Below, in pieces: positions 909-30,800 of a stretch of DNA of 64,000 bases. A program made the translations under genes and the position numbers. A model generated the notes under the pieces. The model saw only the letters and a list, made by a program, of their open reading frames with translations. It did no database searches and was not told where the DNA came from. Each line of letters begins with the position of its first letter. Position 1 is the first letter of the stretch. This DNA is from Diadema antillarum (Eukaryota), in NCBI RefSeq assembly GCF_040938485.1, contig NW_027271046.1, positions 496,001 through 560,000 of the forward strand. Reading direction: 5' to 3'.

Positions 909-3900
909 TTAGTGCAATACGTCACGGAAAAGGGGTGTGGTAGGCCTATATGGCATTGTGGGGTGACTCTCACTTCGTGTGTCCACAGAGTCAAAGGTCA
1001 AGTCGTAGACAACCTGATGTCCATTATCCCATCCGTACAGTTTCTGGTCATGTGGGTTGTAGTCCAGTGACATCATTTCACTGAAGCGGTTGTCGAAGGG
1101 TACTTGAAGCTCTCTGGACACCGCTGTCTTCGTGTCGTAGACAAAATTGACCTTACGAAGAAAACAAAATTAGAACACATCATCAAACGTAAGCGTTTGG
1201 TGTACACACACACGCACACCATTATGCGGAGTAAATGAAAGACAGATAGGCCGTCATAGACCGAACATTATAAACAGTGCACTCCCGTTATAACATACAC
1301 GGTTACAACGGAATTCTTGTTACAACGAAGTAGCAATTCGGGTCCCAAAATTATCATCTATATACTCAACTGCTCGGCTATAACGAAATTATGATGTAAC
1401 GAAAGAAAACTGCCAATCCCGAGGACTTCGTTATAGCGGGAGTCGCTTGTAGCTATTGGGTGTGACAAAGAAAGAAAAAATATAGAAAGGGTGGAGGGGG
1501 AGAGAGTGAAGGCAAGTGGTCGACCTCTCACAATTTAACCCTATAGTAACTGGGCTATTTGAGACCAAGTTTTTACTGGGGGGGGGGGGGTCAATTTGAC
1601 CCCCCTTCAGATCTCAGCCGCCAATCGCGTGATCGCCGCAACGAAATTTTGCTTGAACATAGAACTGGATTTCAACTACAAGATTACATGGTCATATCAA
1701 AGAAAAAAAATTGATTTTCTATTTTTAGAAAATTAATTATGCAGATTTACGCATGAAATCATATTTTCACCTATAACTCCATTAAAAAGACTGAATGATT
1801 GCTAAATTTTTGTGTAAGAGTTCCTCAAGACACATTGAACAATTTTCTTGTTAAAAAAATAGCACAATAAAAATCAGTTACTTTTGTTTTTTATTGTTTT
1901 GTTAATTTCTTATGTATTTCATTGTTTGTTGACCTTTTGTTTTGTATTGTTTTTTGGCAAAAATTTGTTGCAGGCACTTTTTCAAGCTTATCTACATTAA
2001 AATTGATTAATTTCAATGATTAAAAGTTGAAATAATCTAATTATATCAATTTAGCCAAAAAACACAATTTGCATTGGATTTGCACACGATATCATGAATT
2101 TGAGCCATTTTCGGGTTGACATGCATACGCAAAGCATTACGTAACTTCAGAACGGTGTACCCGGACATCGCAAATTTGGTCTCAAATCTTTGCGCGTTGC
2201 TGAATCGCGGCGCGAAATGGTGGGGGGGGGGGTCAAATTGACCCCCCCCCCCCCCCCCCCGTTAGAATAGGGTTAAGTATCTCATTGAACTCTGACTTAC
2301 TATTAGTACGTGACCTGAATTAGTGACCTTCTCACTTTCTCGAACTGTTCCAAAGAAGACAAGACGACAAATTTCAATTATCGATTATAGTATTGCCTCC
2401 TCGTTGCACGTGTATGTTTCAGTAGATTTATTGCTGTTGTTGCTGTGGCCCGTAGTTTTAATACTTACCGAGGCGTCGTTGCTGAAATGATTGTTGACGC
2501 AGTAGAGCTTGGCACAAATCATGAAACAGTTCCCCGCCGTGAATTTGGAGAAGGACGCCATCTTCGTCGCAGTAATATCCAGCGTCTGCGGGTCAAGTTC
2601 ACCCACCGCAATGCGATCTGACAAAGTGTGACGATTAAAGAAAAACATTATCAGTGCATTGCTCCAATCAATGATGAAGATACGAATACGTTGAATTCGT
2701 TTCTATCTTTTCTTCCTCACTTTATAGCATTTTGACATTTTTCATTTCGTGTCGATAAAAGAGATCGCTTGTCAGTGCGTCCTGCCATTTTCGCAGAAAC
2801 ATACAAATTTATAGAAAATTAGATATATTTTTACCTCTTTATCACACTGTGTAACAAAAGAGCACTTGACTTACCTCTTTCAGAACGCATGGAGAGTAAT
2901 ATTAACCTTAACATATGCCAGTAATATGTCGATGAAAAGTGCACTTTTCCACGAAAAAAAAAGAATTGTTATGGAATTCTCCTTATATTTTCTTTATATT
3001 GTTGCCATAATGACGTCATGAAGTGTAGAAGTCTTCTTGTCGAGCAATTTGACGGCACCGAAGCTTTAAAAGATTCATAACTGTTGGCTCGATTGTCTGA
3101 TTTTCTCAATCTCCCACTGATGTGTTCTATTAATTTTGCTGCTTTCATTCAATTCACATTATATTTGGACTTCAGTTTCATAAATTGGAACTTTGAAAAG
3201 TATCTGTAATTTGCATAAACTACCGCCCTGAAACACCTCTCGGTCTTTCCTGCAGTGATTAATGGCGATAAAACTAAGACGTACCTCCGTTTGATGACGG
3301 TGTGTAGATGACCCAGAGACCGTACTCGTCGACAGCCAGATCGATGTCGGTGTACCCCATGGACGCGTAGGCCCCGTCATTGTCTACCAGAGCGTCGGGT
3401 ATCTCTCTCGCGGCGACCACGGCGTTGCTGTCCGCCTGGTACCTAGCCATTGGACGGACGTGATTATGCGTTTTCAGTTTCGTTTATTCATTCCAATAAA
3501 AAATCCGTGGTTACAAAACACACAAAACAATAATCAATCGAAAATTGACATAATACAGACAAACAAGGTTCAAGCTTACATATAAGTTTGCCAAAAATCA
3601 AAAATTCATGGAAATGAAAAAGAGAACTAGAGAAAGGCCTTGCGGCCTTGTATGAAATAAGTTCCCTCAGGTATGTACGAGTACTAGATTATGGAGGCAC
3701 ATAGAGTGTTTTACAGTTTCGAGACAAGAACAGAACAAAAACAACAAAAACATATAGATGTAACAGTCATATGAAAATGTGTAGAAAAAATATATGGTTC
3801 AGTATCTGTCAAGAAAGTACTTTTTGAGAGATTTTTTGAACATCTTTGAATATTTTTGACAGCGTATATCACTTGACAAAGTTTTAATGGAAAGTTTCGA

Positions 3901-4546
3901 AAAACTTCACTAAAAATGACGATATAGCGAGAATACTTCCAGTCACAATAGCTTAAACCATCATTAACAATAATATACTTTGTTCTTGAATGACGGATAA
4001 TAGTGTTGTTGGGGTTTTTTTAAGAAAAGAAGAGAGAGAAATATGGGGTCCTATGGTGGAGATCAGTATACAACAGGTCAAAATATCGAGCGAGGGGAAC
4101 CGTCTTGATGGGAAACTTACCTGATCACTCGATTGCTGCCTTTTTCGTGGTAGTAGAGCGAACCGTTATAAGCTACCATTCCCGGCCCCTGGGAAGGGCT
4201 GCCCGTTGGGAGAATGAAGCGACTCTCGTAATTCGTGCCACGGGTAAAATCCGCCACGTTTGAGAAACGATCTACCTGGTACGTGAACCTGAAAACAGTA
4301 GAACGACATTGTCAGACGAAAGACAACTGACCTGGCACCATCAATACATTATACATAAGTATCTACCAGCGCGTATAGTGTGACTTCTACAGAGTTATAT
4401 TTGAGTGAAGCTATATTAGTGCAGTCATCTTTGCGATTTGAGGAGTGAGGAGTTGGTTGAGAGTCTCACTCAGTTTTATTCCCTCATTCAAATCAAATCT
4501 GTTTTCAAGACGATTTGTCACTTGAGTGTGTGTATATGTGCATTTA

Positions 4547-21846: not shown

Positions 21847-24800
21847 CTAGAAGAAATCCTCCGAGGAGTCGTAATCTTGCACAAGCTGTGCCATGTCGTC
21901 CTCCTCCACACGTGGCAAAATCAGCCGCCTGCTCCTCCTCGTTTTCCGCGGCGGGCCCATCCTGCCGCGGGCTCCATTATGGTTCTCTCTGCCATAGTCG
22001 GAGCCTGCTCTAGTGGCCCGGCCCATGCTGGAGAAAGCCAGAGCTTTCTGCTTCCTCTGAGGAGGCGGAGTTTCCCGCGGTGTGGACCTGTAACGCGACG
22101 ACTACAAAGCAAAATGTGGGAAGCAAGAACCCTGTTTGGTGTAATTAGATCTTTTACGAGGTGTGAGAAGTTCCACTGCTGCACCACTCAGAACTCTCAA
22201 GCTGTGGAATAGAGAGAAGGGTTGTCAATCCATCCTTCACTATGTAGTAGGTCTAGGAAACTCTTATAAAAACTAGCGAAGCACTCTGAGAGTGCAGACC
22301 TCCGCCAAGCATGCAGCTCATTTCCACCACTGATCTTGTTCTTCCACAGAGATATCAGTGATTTCCACCCATACATACTTATACTTCATGCTGAAAGTGT
22401 TTATAATAGTGCGCTGAAAGTCTCCCGATTTCCCAATATAGAAGCCTTTGTTACGTCATAAATCCTCAGCTGCACAGCGCACCTAGCCCTAGCAGAAACT
22501 AGACCACGCACTTTAGTGCGCGCATGCAAACCTCAAATACGTGCAGCCTGAACTCCCAAGTTCATTGACCCTACCTGCCAAAATATCAAAAATCCTTCAT
22601 AAATTCCCGAAAAATTCTCGCATCACTACCAAAAGTTAATCGTTTGTTACTTGTATCGTTCTAAACCTTTCCTGCAAGTTTCATCCAAATCCGTTCACTA
22701 CTTTTTGAGTTATTTTGCACATGGACAAACGAATGAACGAACGAACGAACGAACGAACGACCAAAGCAACGGTAATGAAAACATAACCTCCCCCTTGGCG
22801 GAGGTAATGAAATGTGAGTACAGATGCTTCAGGAAGTTGACGAAGTTCCTGTAGACTTTCCTAAATAGAACATTTATGAAGAACAGCTACACACATGATT
22901 TCTTTTGGGAACACTGCCTAAAATTTCCCTGGGTGATGTTGATGTAGAAGCTGCTGGTGGCATTGAGAGGTTATAAAACAAAGAAAAAAAAAGGTGTAAT
23001 CAGTGTCTAAAGATGCCATGTCTGAGGTCTCTATCTACAGACAAAGGACTCACTCGTATTGACACTAGTAATTAACTCCAGTGCACTTTTCATGAACCGC
23101 AAATGAATAAAAGAACATGCTAATCTGAGATGAAAGAATAGGTTTGAGGGATCAGTAAACAGAAGCACTGCAAGTGGTGAGACGGTATACACATCACATG
23201 CACTCACGCACTATTAAACAGTGTATCCCCTGCTTACTAACTAAATCATTACATCCCCTAATAGAAAAGAAAAAAAAAAAGATATGGGTCAATCATCAAA
23301 TTTAAAATCTATGTGTCTTGATGCAATATTGCCGACTTCCATTATTCTGCATTCCTGCAGGAGTAATCATTTTATGTTAACCAAAGGTTTGGGGTCATAA
23401 CCTTTTACTTTTATGACAGTCTGACATTTGGAGTTATTCCTTTTTAGTTTCTTTGCTTTTTCATTTTACCATTTAGTGGACTCACATTTCTTTAGTGGAA
23501 GATTATTTTTCTCTATACTTAAACTTTTCATAATACATGTAGTCAGCAGTAACATTGATACTGTAAGATTATCATGAACAGAATGTGGTTAATGACTGTG
23601 CCACAATTCATAATCTAATGATGTTTCTATAGTTGTTGCTAAGAAGTTTTACATGCTTTTCTGTGCTTCTGATGTACAGTATAAGTTAGTGTTCCTCTAG
23701 TTCTGAACTGGCTATATACTGTATACAGCACATATTTTGTTGGATTTTTATTTTCGGAAATTTCACAAATCAGACTTATTTGTGAATTTTGAAACGCACA
23801 AAAATATCACTTCAGATCCTGACATAATGTGCACGTGTACATTTCTCCATTCATTGCTGTATTCCATGATCACGAATTCAAATTGCTGAGAAGTCCTGAT
23901 TTGCAAAAACCTAGACTCGCTGAATACATGGCTCATACAGTGCTCCATTTGCCATGTGTATTACACTTGTAGACACAGGGCCTCATCTTTGTCAGGTCCT
24001 CATGAGACAAGGGGAATGAGGGAGCATCTCAGACCATTTCATCAACATCACAGGGAAGGGAAAGGGTAGGGGGAAGAACAAGATAGACAACATATGATTT
24101 CAAACAAAGTCAACCAACCAATGGTGATATAGGTAGTTCAATGTTGTTTTTGTTGTTATTGTGTTGTTTTTTTAATCCTTTGTCTGGTCTCTAAAGGAAA
24201 CCAAACCCCAAAGAGAAATGTGGATTGAGTGGAAGCACCAACATTAGTAGAATACATCAGTGGAAGTTTGAGAAAAGCGGACAATCGATGGAAAAGTTAT
24301 GAATTTGTAAAGTTTTTGTGTTGGAACTGCTTGATGAGGAGACTACCTGAGTTTATGACATCATGTTTATGGACAACAATAATATAGAAAATAAAAAGAA
24401 AATTAAACATGATTTCACTTTTTTAGCATAATGACAGAGCACTTGACTAACGCTCTCAGAAAGCATAGGGAATAATTACTACCCTTAACGTATGTCAGTA
24501 TCAAGTTGATGGAATGTGTAATTTTCATGAAAAATTAATTTTTGTGGAATTCCCATTATATTTTCTTTATATTGTTGTCCACACATGACATTATGAACTC
24601 TAGTAGTCTCCTCATCCAGCTGTTCCCCCCATAAAAAAAAAAAACTTTAAAAATTCATTACTTTTGCAGCGATTGTCCGATTTTCCTCAAACTTTCATTG
24701 ATGTGTTCTGCTAATGTTGCTGCTTTCACTCAATCCACAATTTCTCTTTAGGTTTTAGTTTCCTTTAAGGGGGTGAGATTTGCACCGTCACTTACCAAGA

Positions 24801-27800
24801 CCTGCATGGCTTGGCCCTCCTGGAAATCCTCCTCCTCATCCTCCTCTTCGTCTTCCTCATCATCTTCCTCATCATCAACCTCTTGGTGCATCGGGTGCCT
24901 GAAGAGGTAAAGACAATACATCCAAATCAATTATCAGAAACACAAGCAGTCCGCATAATGCTTACTCTCCAAATGAAGCAAATAAGAGTTTTCATTAACA
25001 GAGACAGTTTGAAGACTGATCATGAACTCTGTTTACTGTTCACAGTTGCATATTCCCTAAGATTCAATGAGCTGATTATCCTGCTATATGCCTCAACTTT
25101 GAATGAAGTCTAATGAATGTGTGTTTGGTAATGAGTGAGTGTCTGAAACAAAACCATGGGCAGATAGACAGCGATGGATGGAGCCTCTCATGGTGTAGAA
25201 ACATGGAAAATCACTAGATTGTTAATAGTTCATACAACAATGGAATTGGATTGGAAGAGGTTCATCGTGGTGAAGAATGAATGAAGAAAGTAATCAGTTG
25301 TCTCACGATGTGCAAACGTTGAGAGGTTGTGACGTTTCGACTGCAAACTGCTAGTCTTCGTCAGGCAATGAACATAGCATGAACATCGCCGAGATGTTCG
25401 ACTTGGACGCACGGAGAGTTCCGCTGTCGCCGAACATGCATGGTCATCCGAGCACCATCCCAACTGGGAAAAGGTTAGCTGCATTATCCACATCCGTCTA
25501 CACCCGAACAACATCAACAGGGATAGCGGCATTGACATCCCTGACGAATGGTTATCGGCCATTCGACGCCACTCGACCAACCGGTTTGAACCGGTTCGAG
25601 ATAGCAACCCCCCCCCCCGGGAACAATAGCAGCACCGCGCCCAGTGATTGGCCATTGACAGCGGCCAACCACAACGCAGGAGCACCTCGACCAATAGCAG
25701 GCCAGCGGCACCGGCCAATGGCAGTCCAGCTCACACCTCAGTAGAGCCGGACAATAGCGCGCCCGGTCGCCCGGGCCCCCTTCACAGCTGTATAAACCGC
25801 ACACAGCGAAGTCTATGTTCATTGCCTGACGAAGACTAGCAGTTTGCAGTCGAAACGTCGCAACCTCTCAACGTTTGCACATCGAGAGACAACTGATTAC
25901 TTTCTTCATTCAACAATAGAATTATTGCACAAATATTGGTGCTGATCTGCTGATCCCTGATCACGGACACAAGAAACCCTAGGTATTCCTATGAATTTTG
26001 CAAACGTCTTTTTTATTCTCAGAATTATGTGTTTGGGCTACATTTCTAAACTTCTGTCAGAAAAATCTTGTGTCATGACAACTCAATACTCTTATCAACT
26101 TTGAAAGGAAGAAAAAGTTAAAACAACAGCAACAAACAGAAAGTGACCATGCCTAGTGCTTGAGAAGCACTATGTTGCATAGGATTTCAAATGCTGATAT
26201 GCAACAAAAATACAGTAAACCTCGGATAAGTCGACGTCGAGTGAGTCGAAAATCACTTAACTAGAAGCAAAATAAAAAGTCCCGATTTTTCCCTATGTGT
26301 TTTTTCTAAGAAATATTTGGATAAGCCGAAGTGCGATAGTCGAATTTCGGCTGTGTCGAAGTAAAACATTCAGTCCCTTTTGTACAAAATACACGTAGTT
26401 TACATCGCTTGAGCCGAAGAAAATTTCTCTGGCATTCTCATTACATTTAGAGGAGAATAAAAAATCGGCATGTCGCAGAACCCCGTCCCTGACCTGCTGC
26501 AGGTAAGCATGCACACTCACCGTACTGCTCCGCACGCATGTCGAATACATACACATGTATACACACAGCACATCGATCCATACTTTATCCATACACACAG
26601 CACATCCATACTTTATCCATGTCAAGCCAGAACTCCTTGGTCAACCAATCGCTGCTTTAATATTTTAGTGACAGGCCAAGTGGGCGGAGCTTGTTTGTGG
26701 GTGCCCGGCTGGCTGTATAGTTTTGTTCAATGGAGTTGGGATGGGCCTGGGAGAGTGTTTGTCTCATGGTAGGTTTATGGCTACCTATGTTGCACCATGG
26801 ACATAGCACATGCACGTTGCCACATTAGCGCAGACATTCTCAGAACTACGTTTAACTACACTAGTATTGATACAAATTCCATGTTCAATTTAGAACAAAA
26901 TAAGAACATTATCTTCAAGAACAGACAAATTTGAATGCAAACACACACACGCAAGCACACACACACATACATGCATGCAAATGTACTATAATACATGTAC
27001 ATAACTGTGAGTCGAAAAAAAATCGACTCTCGCGAGAGTCGAAGTTCACTTAAGTCGACGCATTTTTGTCAGTCCCGAGAGCTTCGACTCATGCGAGGTT
27101 TACTGTATGTGCAAATTTCAGAAATCAACAGGCAAAAACACAACATGATTTAATAGAAATATGTGAAAAAAAACACACACAAAAAAGGAGAAATTCATTG
27201 TGATGAAATGGTATGGCATGGATCACGACAGCACATGACTCTTAACTTCTAAGTTGTTTTCTATTTCGTTGTCATGAAGTGTTTTTTGTTGTGTGATTCT
27301 TGTTATCAGACCACACTACAAATGCATAACAACCACTGTATGCAAAGTAAACCCAGGTCAGGAAAACCCTATCAAAGGCTTGTGTTCACATCCCTCATCT
27401 ATCCACACCCCAAACAGTACAGAAACTCTACCCGTTGAGGACGGATTAATTTTGCTACAGCACATATTTTCCACAGACACTTACACAAGTATTCTCGGGA
27501 CTCATCTTCAATGGGTTAAGATGCTTATCGTCGCTGGGGCAACAAGACCTCGTATCTACAAAATGTCAAAGGTTCAGGAGAGCCCCAAAACATGGCAGCC
27601 AAAGCACAATATAGCAAATGGAAAAGCCTTTCCCTTGACATGCCTTGGTGGCTTCATTTTTGGAGTAAGACATCTAGGATTTGGACAGGACATCACTTAC
27701 CTGATTATTTGACCATAAATCCAAAAAAGTCATTTTCACCAAAATTTGAGATACACAGTCTTGTCACCCCAGTGACGTTATGCATCCTGGTCGATTCCCA

Positions 27801-30800
27801 TGGTCATTTTGGCATGAAAAACAATAAGACCCTAGAACAGTACGAAAACATGCATGTAAAGATTTGTATCTTCCTTGTGATATTTCAATTTGAAGTTACA
27901 AGATAGAAAACAAAACAATATCGTTTCATGCAAACTAACACACTCCTAACAAGGAGTAACATAGGGATTTGTTTTTTTTTTCAAAATAAAGATAGACTCC
28001 CTCCTCTCCTGTATTGCTCATGTGCTTCAGAAGGACTAATTCCTTCTAAGCACATTGGAGTTAATATACAAGTCATTAGTATCATTATGATTAAGGTAAA
28101 TGTAAAACATGGCAATCTTTTGTTTTCTCACATAAACATTAGACTGACTTTGAAGTGAGATCAAAAGATAAAATCTCCCCCTAAAAAAATAAAAAAACCA
28201 CAACAACAAACAACACACAAATCCAAAACCAACGAAACTAAACATGGCTAGTACCTTCAAGTTTCATAATCAAATTATCAGCAACACGTTAGTCACCTTT
28301 TTACATAATTTATGTAAAGAAGGTGGAACACAACATTTGAAAGTGTATCTCCACAATGTTATTCAACACCAAGGGAATGTCTTGAATAATAAATCATAGG
28401 AGACAAATAAACAGGAACACTGTTGAACATGGTGTAACTTAACACCCTGTACCTTGCCCTAGGTCTAGTTCCACTTGCTCTCGGCTTGCCCTCATAACTA
28501 TGCCTAGCTCTATTTTTCTTGGCCCTGACAGTCTGGCTGTTCAGCCAGGAGGCGACTGATGCCTGGGAGGACTGTGACAGGAAGTGTTTCCTGTGGAGGG
28601 GTAGCCATGACAACACTGCAAAAGTTGTGCATCCATTCATAATATATGCAGAAATAACATATACTCTTAAGTACTTCACAATGCTGAGTGAGGAATCTTG
28701 CATCTGCATCAAAAAGTGGCAGCTCTACTGCCTGAGGATTTAACACATATCTGAAGACAAATTTTGCATCTTAGACATCTAAACTACTGCAGCAAAGTTG
28801 ACACCATAGCCAAAAGTGATCACAGCCATCAATATCAAGATGAGGTAAACCCCCATCCTTCCCCCTCCTTTAAAAAAAAAGAAAAAAAAAGAAATGCCAC
28901 CAAGCTGTATATAACTGCAGAAGGGATGCGAAAAGAGAATGGATTAGACACTCTTCATTTAATGTGTATTCAATAGAGACACAGTAAACATCACTTGCTA
29001 GAAACTATCTTTGACTTCGCACTCAAGAAACATTTTACTGAATTTGGTCCCAGTGCAATCCATGCATGACCCTGAAAGTAGGGAGTAAGTACTGTAATAC
29101 CAAAAATTTTCGTGAGCATGAAACTTTTGTAAATTTCCTGAGGAACTGAGATTTGCGAAAGCAAAATGCACCAGCAAGTTTTTGTCTACACAATGCATCA
29201 AAGTCCAGTGGCTATTCGCTAAAGTTTCATGCTTCTGGTTTACAATAATTGTTTCCATCAATAACATGACACCATTCCCAGGCATGAAAGAAACAGTGAG
29301 CTGAATGAATGCAGACACTACTAAACCATGGATTTTTCACTTGGCTAGTAAATGAGAGACAGCAATATGGGAAAAAAAGACTCAGACACTCACTCAAAGT
29401 CTCTCTCTGATCCCTGAAGGGAAGCCTCTTCATCGGCGCGAAGACGTTTCGCAGCCCCTGTCACGTTCATGTGAGCATCGCGGGACAGCCACTGGTCGTT
29501 GGTTCCCTCCTCTACACAAACAGAAAGGACATCAGGATATTTGTTAACCCAAATCTTCCATTATTTTAAAAATAATTGTGAAGGGATTAATCAGAGTGTC
29601 AATACACATTTTCACAAATTAATTACAAAAACTATTCCATTATCTTGCAAAGAGATCGATCCTAGAGCATTGGCATGTTTGACTGTGAAAGGAAAGGGTC
29701 CTAGAAGCATGTCAGTGCACTCTGGGGAGAGGCTCTTAGTACAAATCATGGAATGATTTACAAATCAGAGCTATTGACTAATCATGAAGTAAAGTATCCT
29801 TTTTCAATGCCTGTATATCAAATAACTTGCAACGATTTAGGGTGAAAAAAAAAAAAATCACCATGATTTACTGCTGCAGTCCATAAAAAATCAGTGAGTT
29901 TATATTAATTATTATGTTAGACAGTAGACGTTATCAATTTGGAAACAACAAAAAACTTATCATTATTATCTTTTTAAAGAAATCTAATTCAAATTGATCG
30001 GAATCCATGTCCATTCTTACCCAGATAGCTATACATTTATCATTGCAAGGTTGGAAACTACAATCTCACTAATATCTTCCAACCACATCATATGAGCCAG
30101 TCTGACTCCCCTCTCAGATTATATGACTGCACCCTGACTGCATAATATGCCACCCTTCCCAAGAAGAGAAATGGTCGGATTCACTCACCCCCTTGCATGG
30201 CCATTTTCCTCTTGAGGTTCTTAGCCTGCTTCTTGGAGACCTTCAAGGGGCGTGGCACCTCTGGCAACCTCTCCACCAGGTCTCCCTGCAGGAGGCTGTG
30301 CCGGTAGATCCTCAGGGGCGCCCACTCCTCCCCCTCCTGCTCCGTCATGCCCTCCTTAAGGTTCTTGTCAAGGTACTGCAGCCTGTGGGGTGGGGGAACA
30401 GGGGAACCATGAATTGAAGAGAATCAGTTAAGTGACTGCAGCACTGAGTTCGCATGGGTAAAGGTCTCAACTCTCTTTGAGATTCTGGATTAAAATTAAA
30501 ATAAAAACAACTGGCTAAATTTGGCTAATTTTTGTACCCCCAGTTTTTGCCATTATAGCTCATGTGTGTTTTTTCTGGTTCATTACCTCTCAGATTGTCT
30601 GTCTGCCTATATGTATGTACATTTGTATGTACACATGTGTACACGTTTGTCTGGCTGTCTGTGAAACTTTGGAGTGTGCATATCTATACATGTTTATACA
30701 GTATGTATACATGCTTACTTATGAAGGTGTGTACATATAAATGTATGCATATCAACACCACATCACCGAATGTATCATTAGTTGTAATCATATGAGATAA

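Follow-up and report, generated by a model that had tools for sequence, protein, structure and literature searches.

The STAG locus and the boundaries of the insertion

The window (the whole 64-kb stretch of DNA analysed here) carries on its minus strand a cohesin SA/STAG gene whose STAG, SCD and HEAT_SCC3-SA exons, as recognized by Pfam, run from ca. 47.9 kb down to 37.1 kb. One of these exons led to a full-length STAG relative of 1262 aa (P0005), the cohesin subunit SA-2-like protein of the crinoid Antedon mediterranea, with which the STAG exons were placed one by one by tblastn at positions that are colinear throughout. The probable last exon ends near 21850, and the exons closest to the element under study are the following:

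30190 to 30381, minus strand: nearest well-supported upstream STAG exon (tblastn, P0005 residues 1011-1072)
29402 to 29515, minus strand: weak candidate STAG exon (tblastn with P0005, E 0.6)
24796 to 24898, minus strand: STAG exon downstream of the element, with a canonical AG acceptor and GT donor

The tblastn match of the downstream exon spans ca. 24769-24870 and covers P0005 residues 1114-1146 (53% identity, E 6.6e-7 in an 11.5-kb target). Judged by the homology of these flanking minus-strand exons, the element appears to sit in an intron of the STAG gene, as the original prediction had proposed, and more precisely in a 3'-proximal one, with its edge 350 nt upstream of the 3' splice site of the exon at 24796-24898 and its body antisense to the gene. 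The parts of this Penelope-like element (PLE) and of its target site are arranged as follows:

25237 to 25247, no strand: left copy of the target-site duplication, ACAATGGAATT, from the junctions aligned to the empty site
25248 to 25277, minus strand: PLE tail extension of 30 nt, outside the inverted repeat and at the left end only
25278 to 25377, minus strand: short inverted arm, the final 100 nt of the element (inverted repeat I1, 98% complementary)
25378 to 25744, plus strand: remnant of the PLE open reading frame, corresponding to residues 487-616 (the last 130 codons) of a 616-aa ORF of the family
25745 to 25812, plus strand: element 3' UTR, with TATAAA at 25791
25813 to 25912, plus strand: right arm, the 3'-terminal 100 nt of the truncated body, without a tail at its end
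25913 to 25923, no strand: right copy of the target-site duplication, ACAATAGAATT, with one mismatch to the left copy

The two arms of 100 nt each are complementary at 98 of 100 positions and spaced by 435 nt, precisely at the coordinates and with the identity originally given for them, and the left arm is 97-99% identical to the arms of other copies of the same family. The outer limits of the element, which had been set at the outer edges of the arms (25278-25912), had to be revised at one side, since the insertion already starts at 25248 with the 30-nt tail. These boundaries come from a second STAG locus ca. 598 kb away on the same contig, which is 94-96% identical around the insertion point and does not contain the element. 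Aligning both junctions to its empty site (at about 1256-1274 of locus L036) gives a complete insertion of 665 nt (25248-25912) flanked by a target duplication of 11-13 bp, the length of 13 nt including a CA that the duplication has in common with the element end. For this PLE family of echinoderm type, the empty site thereby shows exactly where the insertion begins and ends, what was duplicated at the target and that the tail is confined to one side. The insertion is fairly recent, in line with what had been suggested from the arms: these share 98% identity, and a second locus that is 94-96% identical does not contain it.

The same anatomy recurs across the family. The identical 30-nt tail is found at exactly one end in eight distinct inverted pairs and also in two copies of which a single end was seen, while the tail-less end of other insertions stops at ...CATTCA and five other insertions of the family are flanked by target duplications of 10-12 bp.

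Hammerhead motifs in the two arms

Each arm contains one minimal type I hammerhead motif (min-HHR), and the two lie in opposite orientation. This part of the original prediction can be read directly from the sequence, and a covariance model (R1, see below) matches both sites:

25822 to 25863, plus strand: intact minimal type I hammerhead motif, antisense to the host gene, with a predicted cut at 25859/25860
25327 to 25368, minus strand: minimal type I hammerhead motif in the sense of the host gene, with a predicted cut at 25331/25330

In the right arm, the motif consists of TTGC, CTGACGA, A, a 19-nt stem II, GAAA, CG, TC and GCAA in this order, and the 19-nt stem-loop is formed by a 4-bp and a 2-bp helix with a bulged A between them. 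The motif of the left arm is the same except for ACAA in place of GCAA, which is one of only two differences between the arms; the other one (CGAGAG on the left, CGTGAG on the right) is located outside the motif. This G-to-A change of the left arm affects a CpG, as is typical of CpG decay, and produces a C-A mismatch in the pair adjoining the cut site (1.1-2.1), i.e., the innermost pair of helix I. Both arms have the conserved core CUGANGA ... GAAA ... UH as well as helices I and II, and the hallmarks of min-HHRs are present in the form of the A that follows CUGACGA, the G10.1-C11.1 pair closing helix II and a palindromic ACGU.

The motif thus shares with the min-HHRs published from PLE pLTRs (the terminal repeats of these elements) the CUGANGA and GAAA cores, the G10.1-C11.1 pair, a helix I of 4 bp, a longer helix II of 6 bp with one bulged A, a monomer without helix III in which the palindromic ACGU could form helix III upon dimerization, and the occurrence in opposed pairs 100-700 bp apart (PMC4209133). 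It stands apart from them by a C at N7, by a predicted competing GACG:CGUC pairing and, in the left copy, by the C-A at 1.1-2.1.

A scan with covariance models gave a divided answer. The Rfam hammerhead models found no match in the whole 64-kb window at gathering score and none in 25200-26000 even at E<=10, whereas a custom model built from PLEs recognized both arms. Published searches for min-HHRs, the monomers of which lack helix III, relied on RNAmotif structure descriptors and not on Rfam models (PMC4209133). Our model R1 was trained solely on other PLE families of the genome, with the family of the window left out, and scores the right-arm motif at 39.1 bits (E 1.1e-8) and the left-arm motif at 31.4 bits (E 1.8e-6), both E-values referring to the 64-kb window. 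The two arms are the only significant sites in this window, with the next best hit at E 0.87. Curated Rfam hammerhead models therefore miss min-HHRs that a small family-specific model finds easily.

Other PLE families of the genome (58% amino-acid identity to that of the window) show the same motif architecture with different helix sequences. In an alignment of small depth, comprising seven sequences from three PLE families of the genome, 7 of the 11 pairs in helices I and II change on both sides. The corresponding figure is 3.5 for shuffles and 0-1 for slid controls; just one of 500 shuffles arrived at 7, and the observed covariation values as a whole were matched by 0-1 of 500. Across the genome, the strict motif string is found at 194 sites as opposed to two for the reversed control. 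Together, the R1 match, the covariation and this enrichment indicate that the hammerhead motif in both arms is real, as a motif of putative catalytic activity.

The same results decide on the view that the hammerhead-like strings are chance matches devoid of RNA structure. This view could draw on the silence of the Rfam models and on minimum free energy folds that do not contain the catalytic fold, but it is contradicted by the ca. 100-fold enrichment over the reversed control, by compensatory changes in helices I and II across families, by the presence of every published min-HHR hallmark (PMC4209133) and by the match of an independent covariance model to both arms. Covariation, independent model and genome-wide enrichment effectively refute it, leaving it with next to no probability.

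Element family, coding remnant and proposed mode of integration

With a 635-bp query covering the two arms and the interval between them, we obtained 119 matches in the 1.75-Gb genome. The bodies of family copies start at query positions 100, 119, 265, 284, 342, 480 and ca. 503 and share one 3' terminus, and this combination of many start points with a single 3' terminus is a pattern of 5' truncation. A longer family copy of 2.1 kb (L033) has inverted arms of 107 nt and an ORF of 616 aa that matches the reverse transcriptase profile PF00078 (E 2.8e-10) and contains a DKG motif, as ILPADKGRA, at residues 20-28; neither is part of the window copy, the truncation point of which lies downstream of the reverse transcriptase. 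Against the GIY-YIG profile PF01541, the 616-aa ORF gives weak matches with E-values of 0.004-0.056 and 17.9 bits versus a cut-off of 22.6, and its putative GIY-YIG region displays the CxxC...HxH arrangement (VYKIPCSTCDKVYIGETG...HEH). In the genome as a whole, candidate PLE ORF sites number more than 1600.

The original prediction had recognized a PLE fragment enclosing a GIY-YIG remnant. The first part is borne out by the interior of the element, which aligns with the family ORF (C245) by tblastn in two segments in different frames, one at 78% identity over 91 aa (E 3e-47) and the other at 81% over 58 aa (E 6e-28). The second part holds by homology to the family ORF but has to be qualified: the remnant begins inside the GIY-YIG domain past the GIY and YIG motifs, which are thus lost, and a Pfam search of the window ORFs, including 25378-25608 in the right frame, gave no profile match. 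It appears recognizable as GIY-YIG solely via the family ORF. Moreover, 14 codons are deleted from the remnant and its frame shifts close to a run of C at 25608, while its stop codon is kept at 25742-25744.

The CCAAT/TATA stretch that had been noted between the arms is present as well, with CCAAT at 25691 and 25715 in the ORF tail, ATTGG at 25647 and TATAAA at 25791 in the 3' UTR. The terminal repeats of PLEs (pLTRs) hold a promoter according to Schostak 2008, as cited in PMC8557442. By analogy, the CCAAT/TATAAA stretch just upstream of the hammerhead motif is a possible pLTR promoter.

These features agree with Penelope-like elements (EN+) in their heavy 5' truncation, an inverted 5'-truncated copy that abuts the body, a tail of 30 nt confined to one end, a short target duplication and a hammerhead in the terminal repeat, and nothing essential sets the element apart from them, the window copy being reduced to the last 130 codons with a shifted frame. 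PLE insertions typically consist of an inverted 5'-truncated copy with a one-sided tail (PMC8557442), and this tail measures 30-40 bp (PMC8557442, PMC11167929). The locus is therefore very probably a 5'-truncated, dead-on-arrival PLE insertion in the STAG intron with its body antisense to the gene.

How such an insertion could arise is suggested by its anatomy and by in vitro work on a lizard PLE, the protein of which cleaves and extends both target strands and starts reverse transcription at two adjacent sites whose interval corresponds to the tail (PMC11167929). In a dual-strand priming scenario, the PLE reverse transcriptase-endonuclease would cut the two target strands ca. 11 bp apart, and each of the cut 3' ends would prime reverse transcription of the 3' region of the element RNA. 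A cDNA begun at the distal start site would comprise the 30-nt tail and ca. 100 nt and become the left arm, while a second one of 535 nt, begun at the internal start site and lacking the tail, would give rise to the right arm together with the ORF tail and the 3' UTR. Once joined, the two cDNAs would form an inverted repeat with a copy of the target duplication on either side. As a normal component of the PLE 3' end (pLTR), the hammerhead motif would be copied into both arms, on opposite strands.

The inverted layout, on which the original prediction had built its functional ideas, is accordingly no peculiarity of this copy. Among the first 100 listed of the 194 genomic motif sites, close motif pairs were divergent (-,+) in 13 cases, tandem in two and convergent in none, so that the divergent layout of the window is the commonest paired layout among the sites listed and shows no special design. 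This bias among the listed sites agrees with the priming of PLEs on both target strands in vitro (PMC11167929). Cervera and de la Pena (2014) already described dual min-HHRs that lie ca. 100-700 bp apart on opposite strands and probably stem from truncated PLEs (PMC4209133). The feature is thus a real, ordinary and already described kind of PLE insertion, a textbook case that matters little as a discovery.

The structure resembles the outcome of L1 'twin priming' in that two cDNAs from both target strands yield an inverted 5'-truncated structure with a target duplication. In twin priming, the second primer pairs with an internal site of the same RNA, and it is the 5' part that becomes inverted. 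Both arms in the window copy the same 3' end instead, as would follow from extension of both strands by the PLE enzyme starting in the 3' region of the RNA (PMC11167929).

The original prediction had further called the element a mini-element, and we considered in this context whether it could be a separate non-autonomous unit, i.e., a mini-PLE, a retrozyme-like element or a foldback/MITE-type DNA transposon with terminal inverted repeats. The 100-nt terminal inverted repeats with their target duplication and the recurrence of arm lengths near 100 nt in several copies would fit such a unit. Yet the genome-wide search with the 635-bp query found no second copy with identical internal boundaries, and body starts vary beside arms of ca. 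100 nt. The interior is moreover colinear with the 3' end of the RT/GIY-YIG ORF, and the tail at one end makes the two ends asymmetric, unlike true terminal inverted repeats. A MITE or foldback DNA transposon was rejected on these grounds.

Animal non-LTR retrozymes are short non-coding elements that form same-strand tandem arrays and can give circular RNAs. They are like the window element in their ties to PLE pLTRs and in their type I hammerheads, and a 2026 preprint argues for an origin of animal retrozymes from PLE pLTRs (doi 10.64898/2026.07.22.740005). The insertion, by contrast, is made up of just one inverted pair, in which each strand has one motif and the arms enclose a coding remnant, and no direct repeats beyond 20-nt chance matches were detected in 24800-26400; a retrozyme was rejected on the opposite strands of the motifs and this lack of a direct repeat. 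A separate non-autonomous unit of any of these kinds is very improbable, and the element is better described as one of many family copies that are 5'-truncated at differing points.

The lengths of inverted arms in the family cluster near 43, 100-107 and 126-135 nt, which is beyond what simple random truncation explains. Ends made by the ribozyme do not account for this clustering, since no more than two arms, of 51-52 nt, stop close to its predicted cut.

Predicted RNA folding and possible functions

A transcript of either strand contains one motif in ribozyme sense together with its complement. Sequence geometry and predicted folding agree in this respect with the original prediction, which had assigned one ribozyme to each transcript and expected the arms to pair. 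In a transcript of host sense, full pairing of the arms is predicted, with a minimum free energy of -378.7 kcal/mol for the element. The predicted duplex of the arms accounts for ca. -183 kcal/mol, compared to -8.1 for the hammerhead secondary structure of the right arm and -5.6 for that of the left. If the intron is transcribed, the arms would thus form an extended hairpin in which both the host-sense motif and its complement are hidden. Transcription in host sense would reach the complement at the start and come to the ribozyme-sense arm, the one with the helix I mismatch, only at the end. The isolated 42-nt unit is also predicted to prefer a non-catalytic GACG:CGUC pairing, and neither the catalytic monomer nor a helix III dimer was recovered by minimum free energy and cofold predictions. 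This failure was not counted against the motif because nearest-neighbour folding ignores hammerhead tertiary structure.

From the layout of the arms, the original prediction had envisaged a role for the inverted pair in the pre-mRNA of STAG, be it as a conditional device switching between ribozyme and duplex, as an ADAR substrate or as a source of small RNAs. The complete arm pairing predicted for the host-sense transcript and the distance of 350 nt between the element and a 3' splice site speak for such a role, and editing and dicing act on long inverted repeats in introns quite generally. Editing or dicing of the intronic hairpin is plausible in this generic sense, as it would be for any inverted repeat. 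Several observations nevertheless speak against a functional device. PLE integration yields this layout by default and it is common genome-wide, which leaves no sign of selection, and the second STAG copy lacks the insertion. The differences between the arms resemble neutral decay, and one of them disrupts helix I in the host-sense motif. With a duplex that exceeds the hammerhead fold in stability by over 170 kcal/mol, a complement that is transcribed first and a 42-nt unit that favours the non-catalytic pairing when isolated, the folding predictions disfavour a switch between ribozyme and duplex. Single min-HHRs showed no detectable cleavage in vitro and even dimers cleaved poorly (PMC4209133), and in the lizard PLE there were no read ends at the hammerhead site and hammerhead mutations had no effect on insertion (PMC11167929). 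We thus regard a function of the inverted pair in STAG pre-mRNA as quite improbable and infer that the element most likely does nothing specific at the STAG locus.

A more general idea is that foldback PLE copies in expressed introns, such as the one in STAG, which arise routinely when PLEs integrate, might yield long hairpin RNAs that feed into small RNAs or editing. We consider this unlikely, but if it were true, each such insertion would be an accidental, self-made silencing trigger against its own PLE family, with possible side effects on the splicing of the exon 350 nt downstream.

Hammerhead cores and their predicted competing fold

Both minimal type I hammerhead motifs of the window (25822-25863 on the forward and 25327-25368 on the reverse strand) carry a C at core position 7, which enables the core GACG to pair with a CGUC that spans the predicted cut site in either motif. 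In ViennaRNA predictions for these two motifs, the non-catalytic GACG:CGUC fold is 4.5-6 kcal/mol more stable than the secondary structure of the hammerhead. Some copies of the PLE family have a U at core position 7.

Across the genome, minimal hammerheads form at least four sequence families with a common core and common flanks and with fully compensated helix II sequences (GACU/AGUC, GCUC/GAGC, GCGUCC/GGACGY and GCCAAUU/AAUUGGC), and nearly all close pairs among the genome matches listed are in divergent (-,+) order. Example sites are:
C9:3040930-3041022, minimal hammerhead site
C70:2053463-2054499, minimal hammerhead site
C303:1034484-1034517, minimal hammerhead site

Arm lengths and individual copies of the PLE family

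We took arm lengths from the family copies among the genome matches of the window element, for example:
C1479:296809-296888, family copy
C300:1083696-1083775, family copy
C76:3868329-3868408, family copy
C443:453786-454045, family copy

The lengths of short or inverted arms, counted from the 3' end, are not evenly spread and instead cluster near 43, 100-107 and 126-135 nt. Tiny palindromes of 43+43 nt make up many of the family's insertions, and arms end near the predicted hammerhead cut in only two of the family copies listed, on C692 (52 nt) and C129 (51 nt).

The seemingly intact 616-aa RT/GIY-YIG ORF of the copy on contig C245 is probably 5'-truncated with a start codon supplied by the antisense arm, because its ATG (L033:1372-1383) falls within the upstream inverted arm (1277-1383) and its DKG motif appears as early as residue 24. 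C48 carries an identical copy, perhaps as part of a further region that is duplicated or represents a second haplotype. Tandem repeats adjoin two family copies:
L033:455-1320 and 3417-4050, array of 71-bp repeats enclosing the C245 copy and running on at both sides
L031:6343-7001, repeat of ca. 275 bp directly downstream of a copy on C762

A second STAG locus

The entire STAG locus occurs a second time on the contig of the window, ca. 598 kb away and with unchanged orientation:
C158, ca. 1,106,000-1,142,400 (L035, L036), second copy, compared with window 22000-48000

Exon scores of the two copies are almost equal, non-coding identity is 94-96%, and several large indels separate them; the PLE insertion is missing from the second copy. 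The doubling may reflect either a segmental duplication of recent date or the tandem placement of two haplotypes by the assembler.
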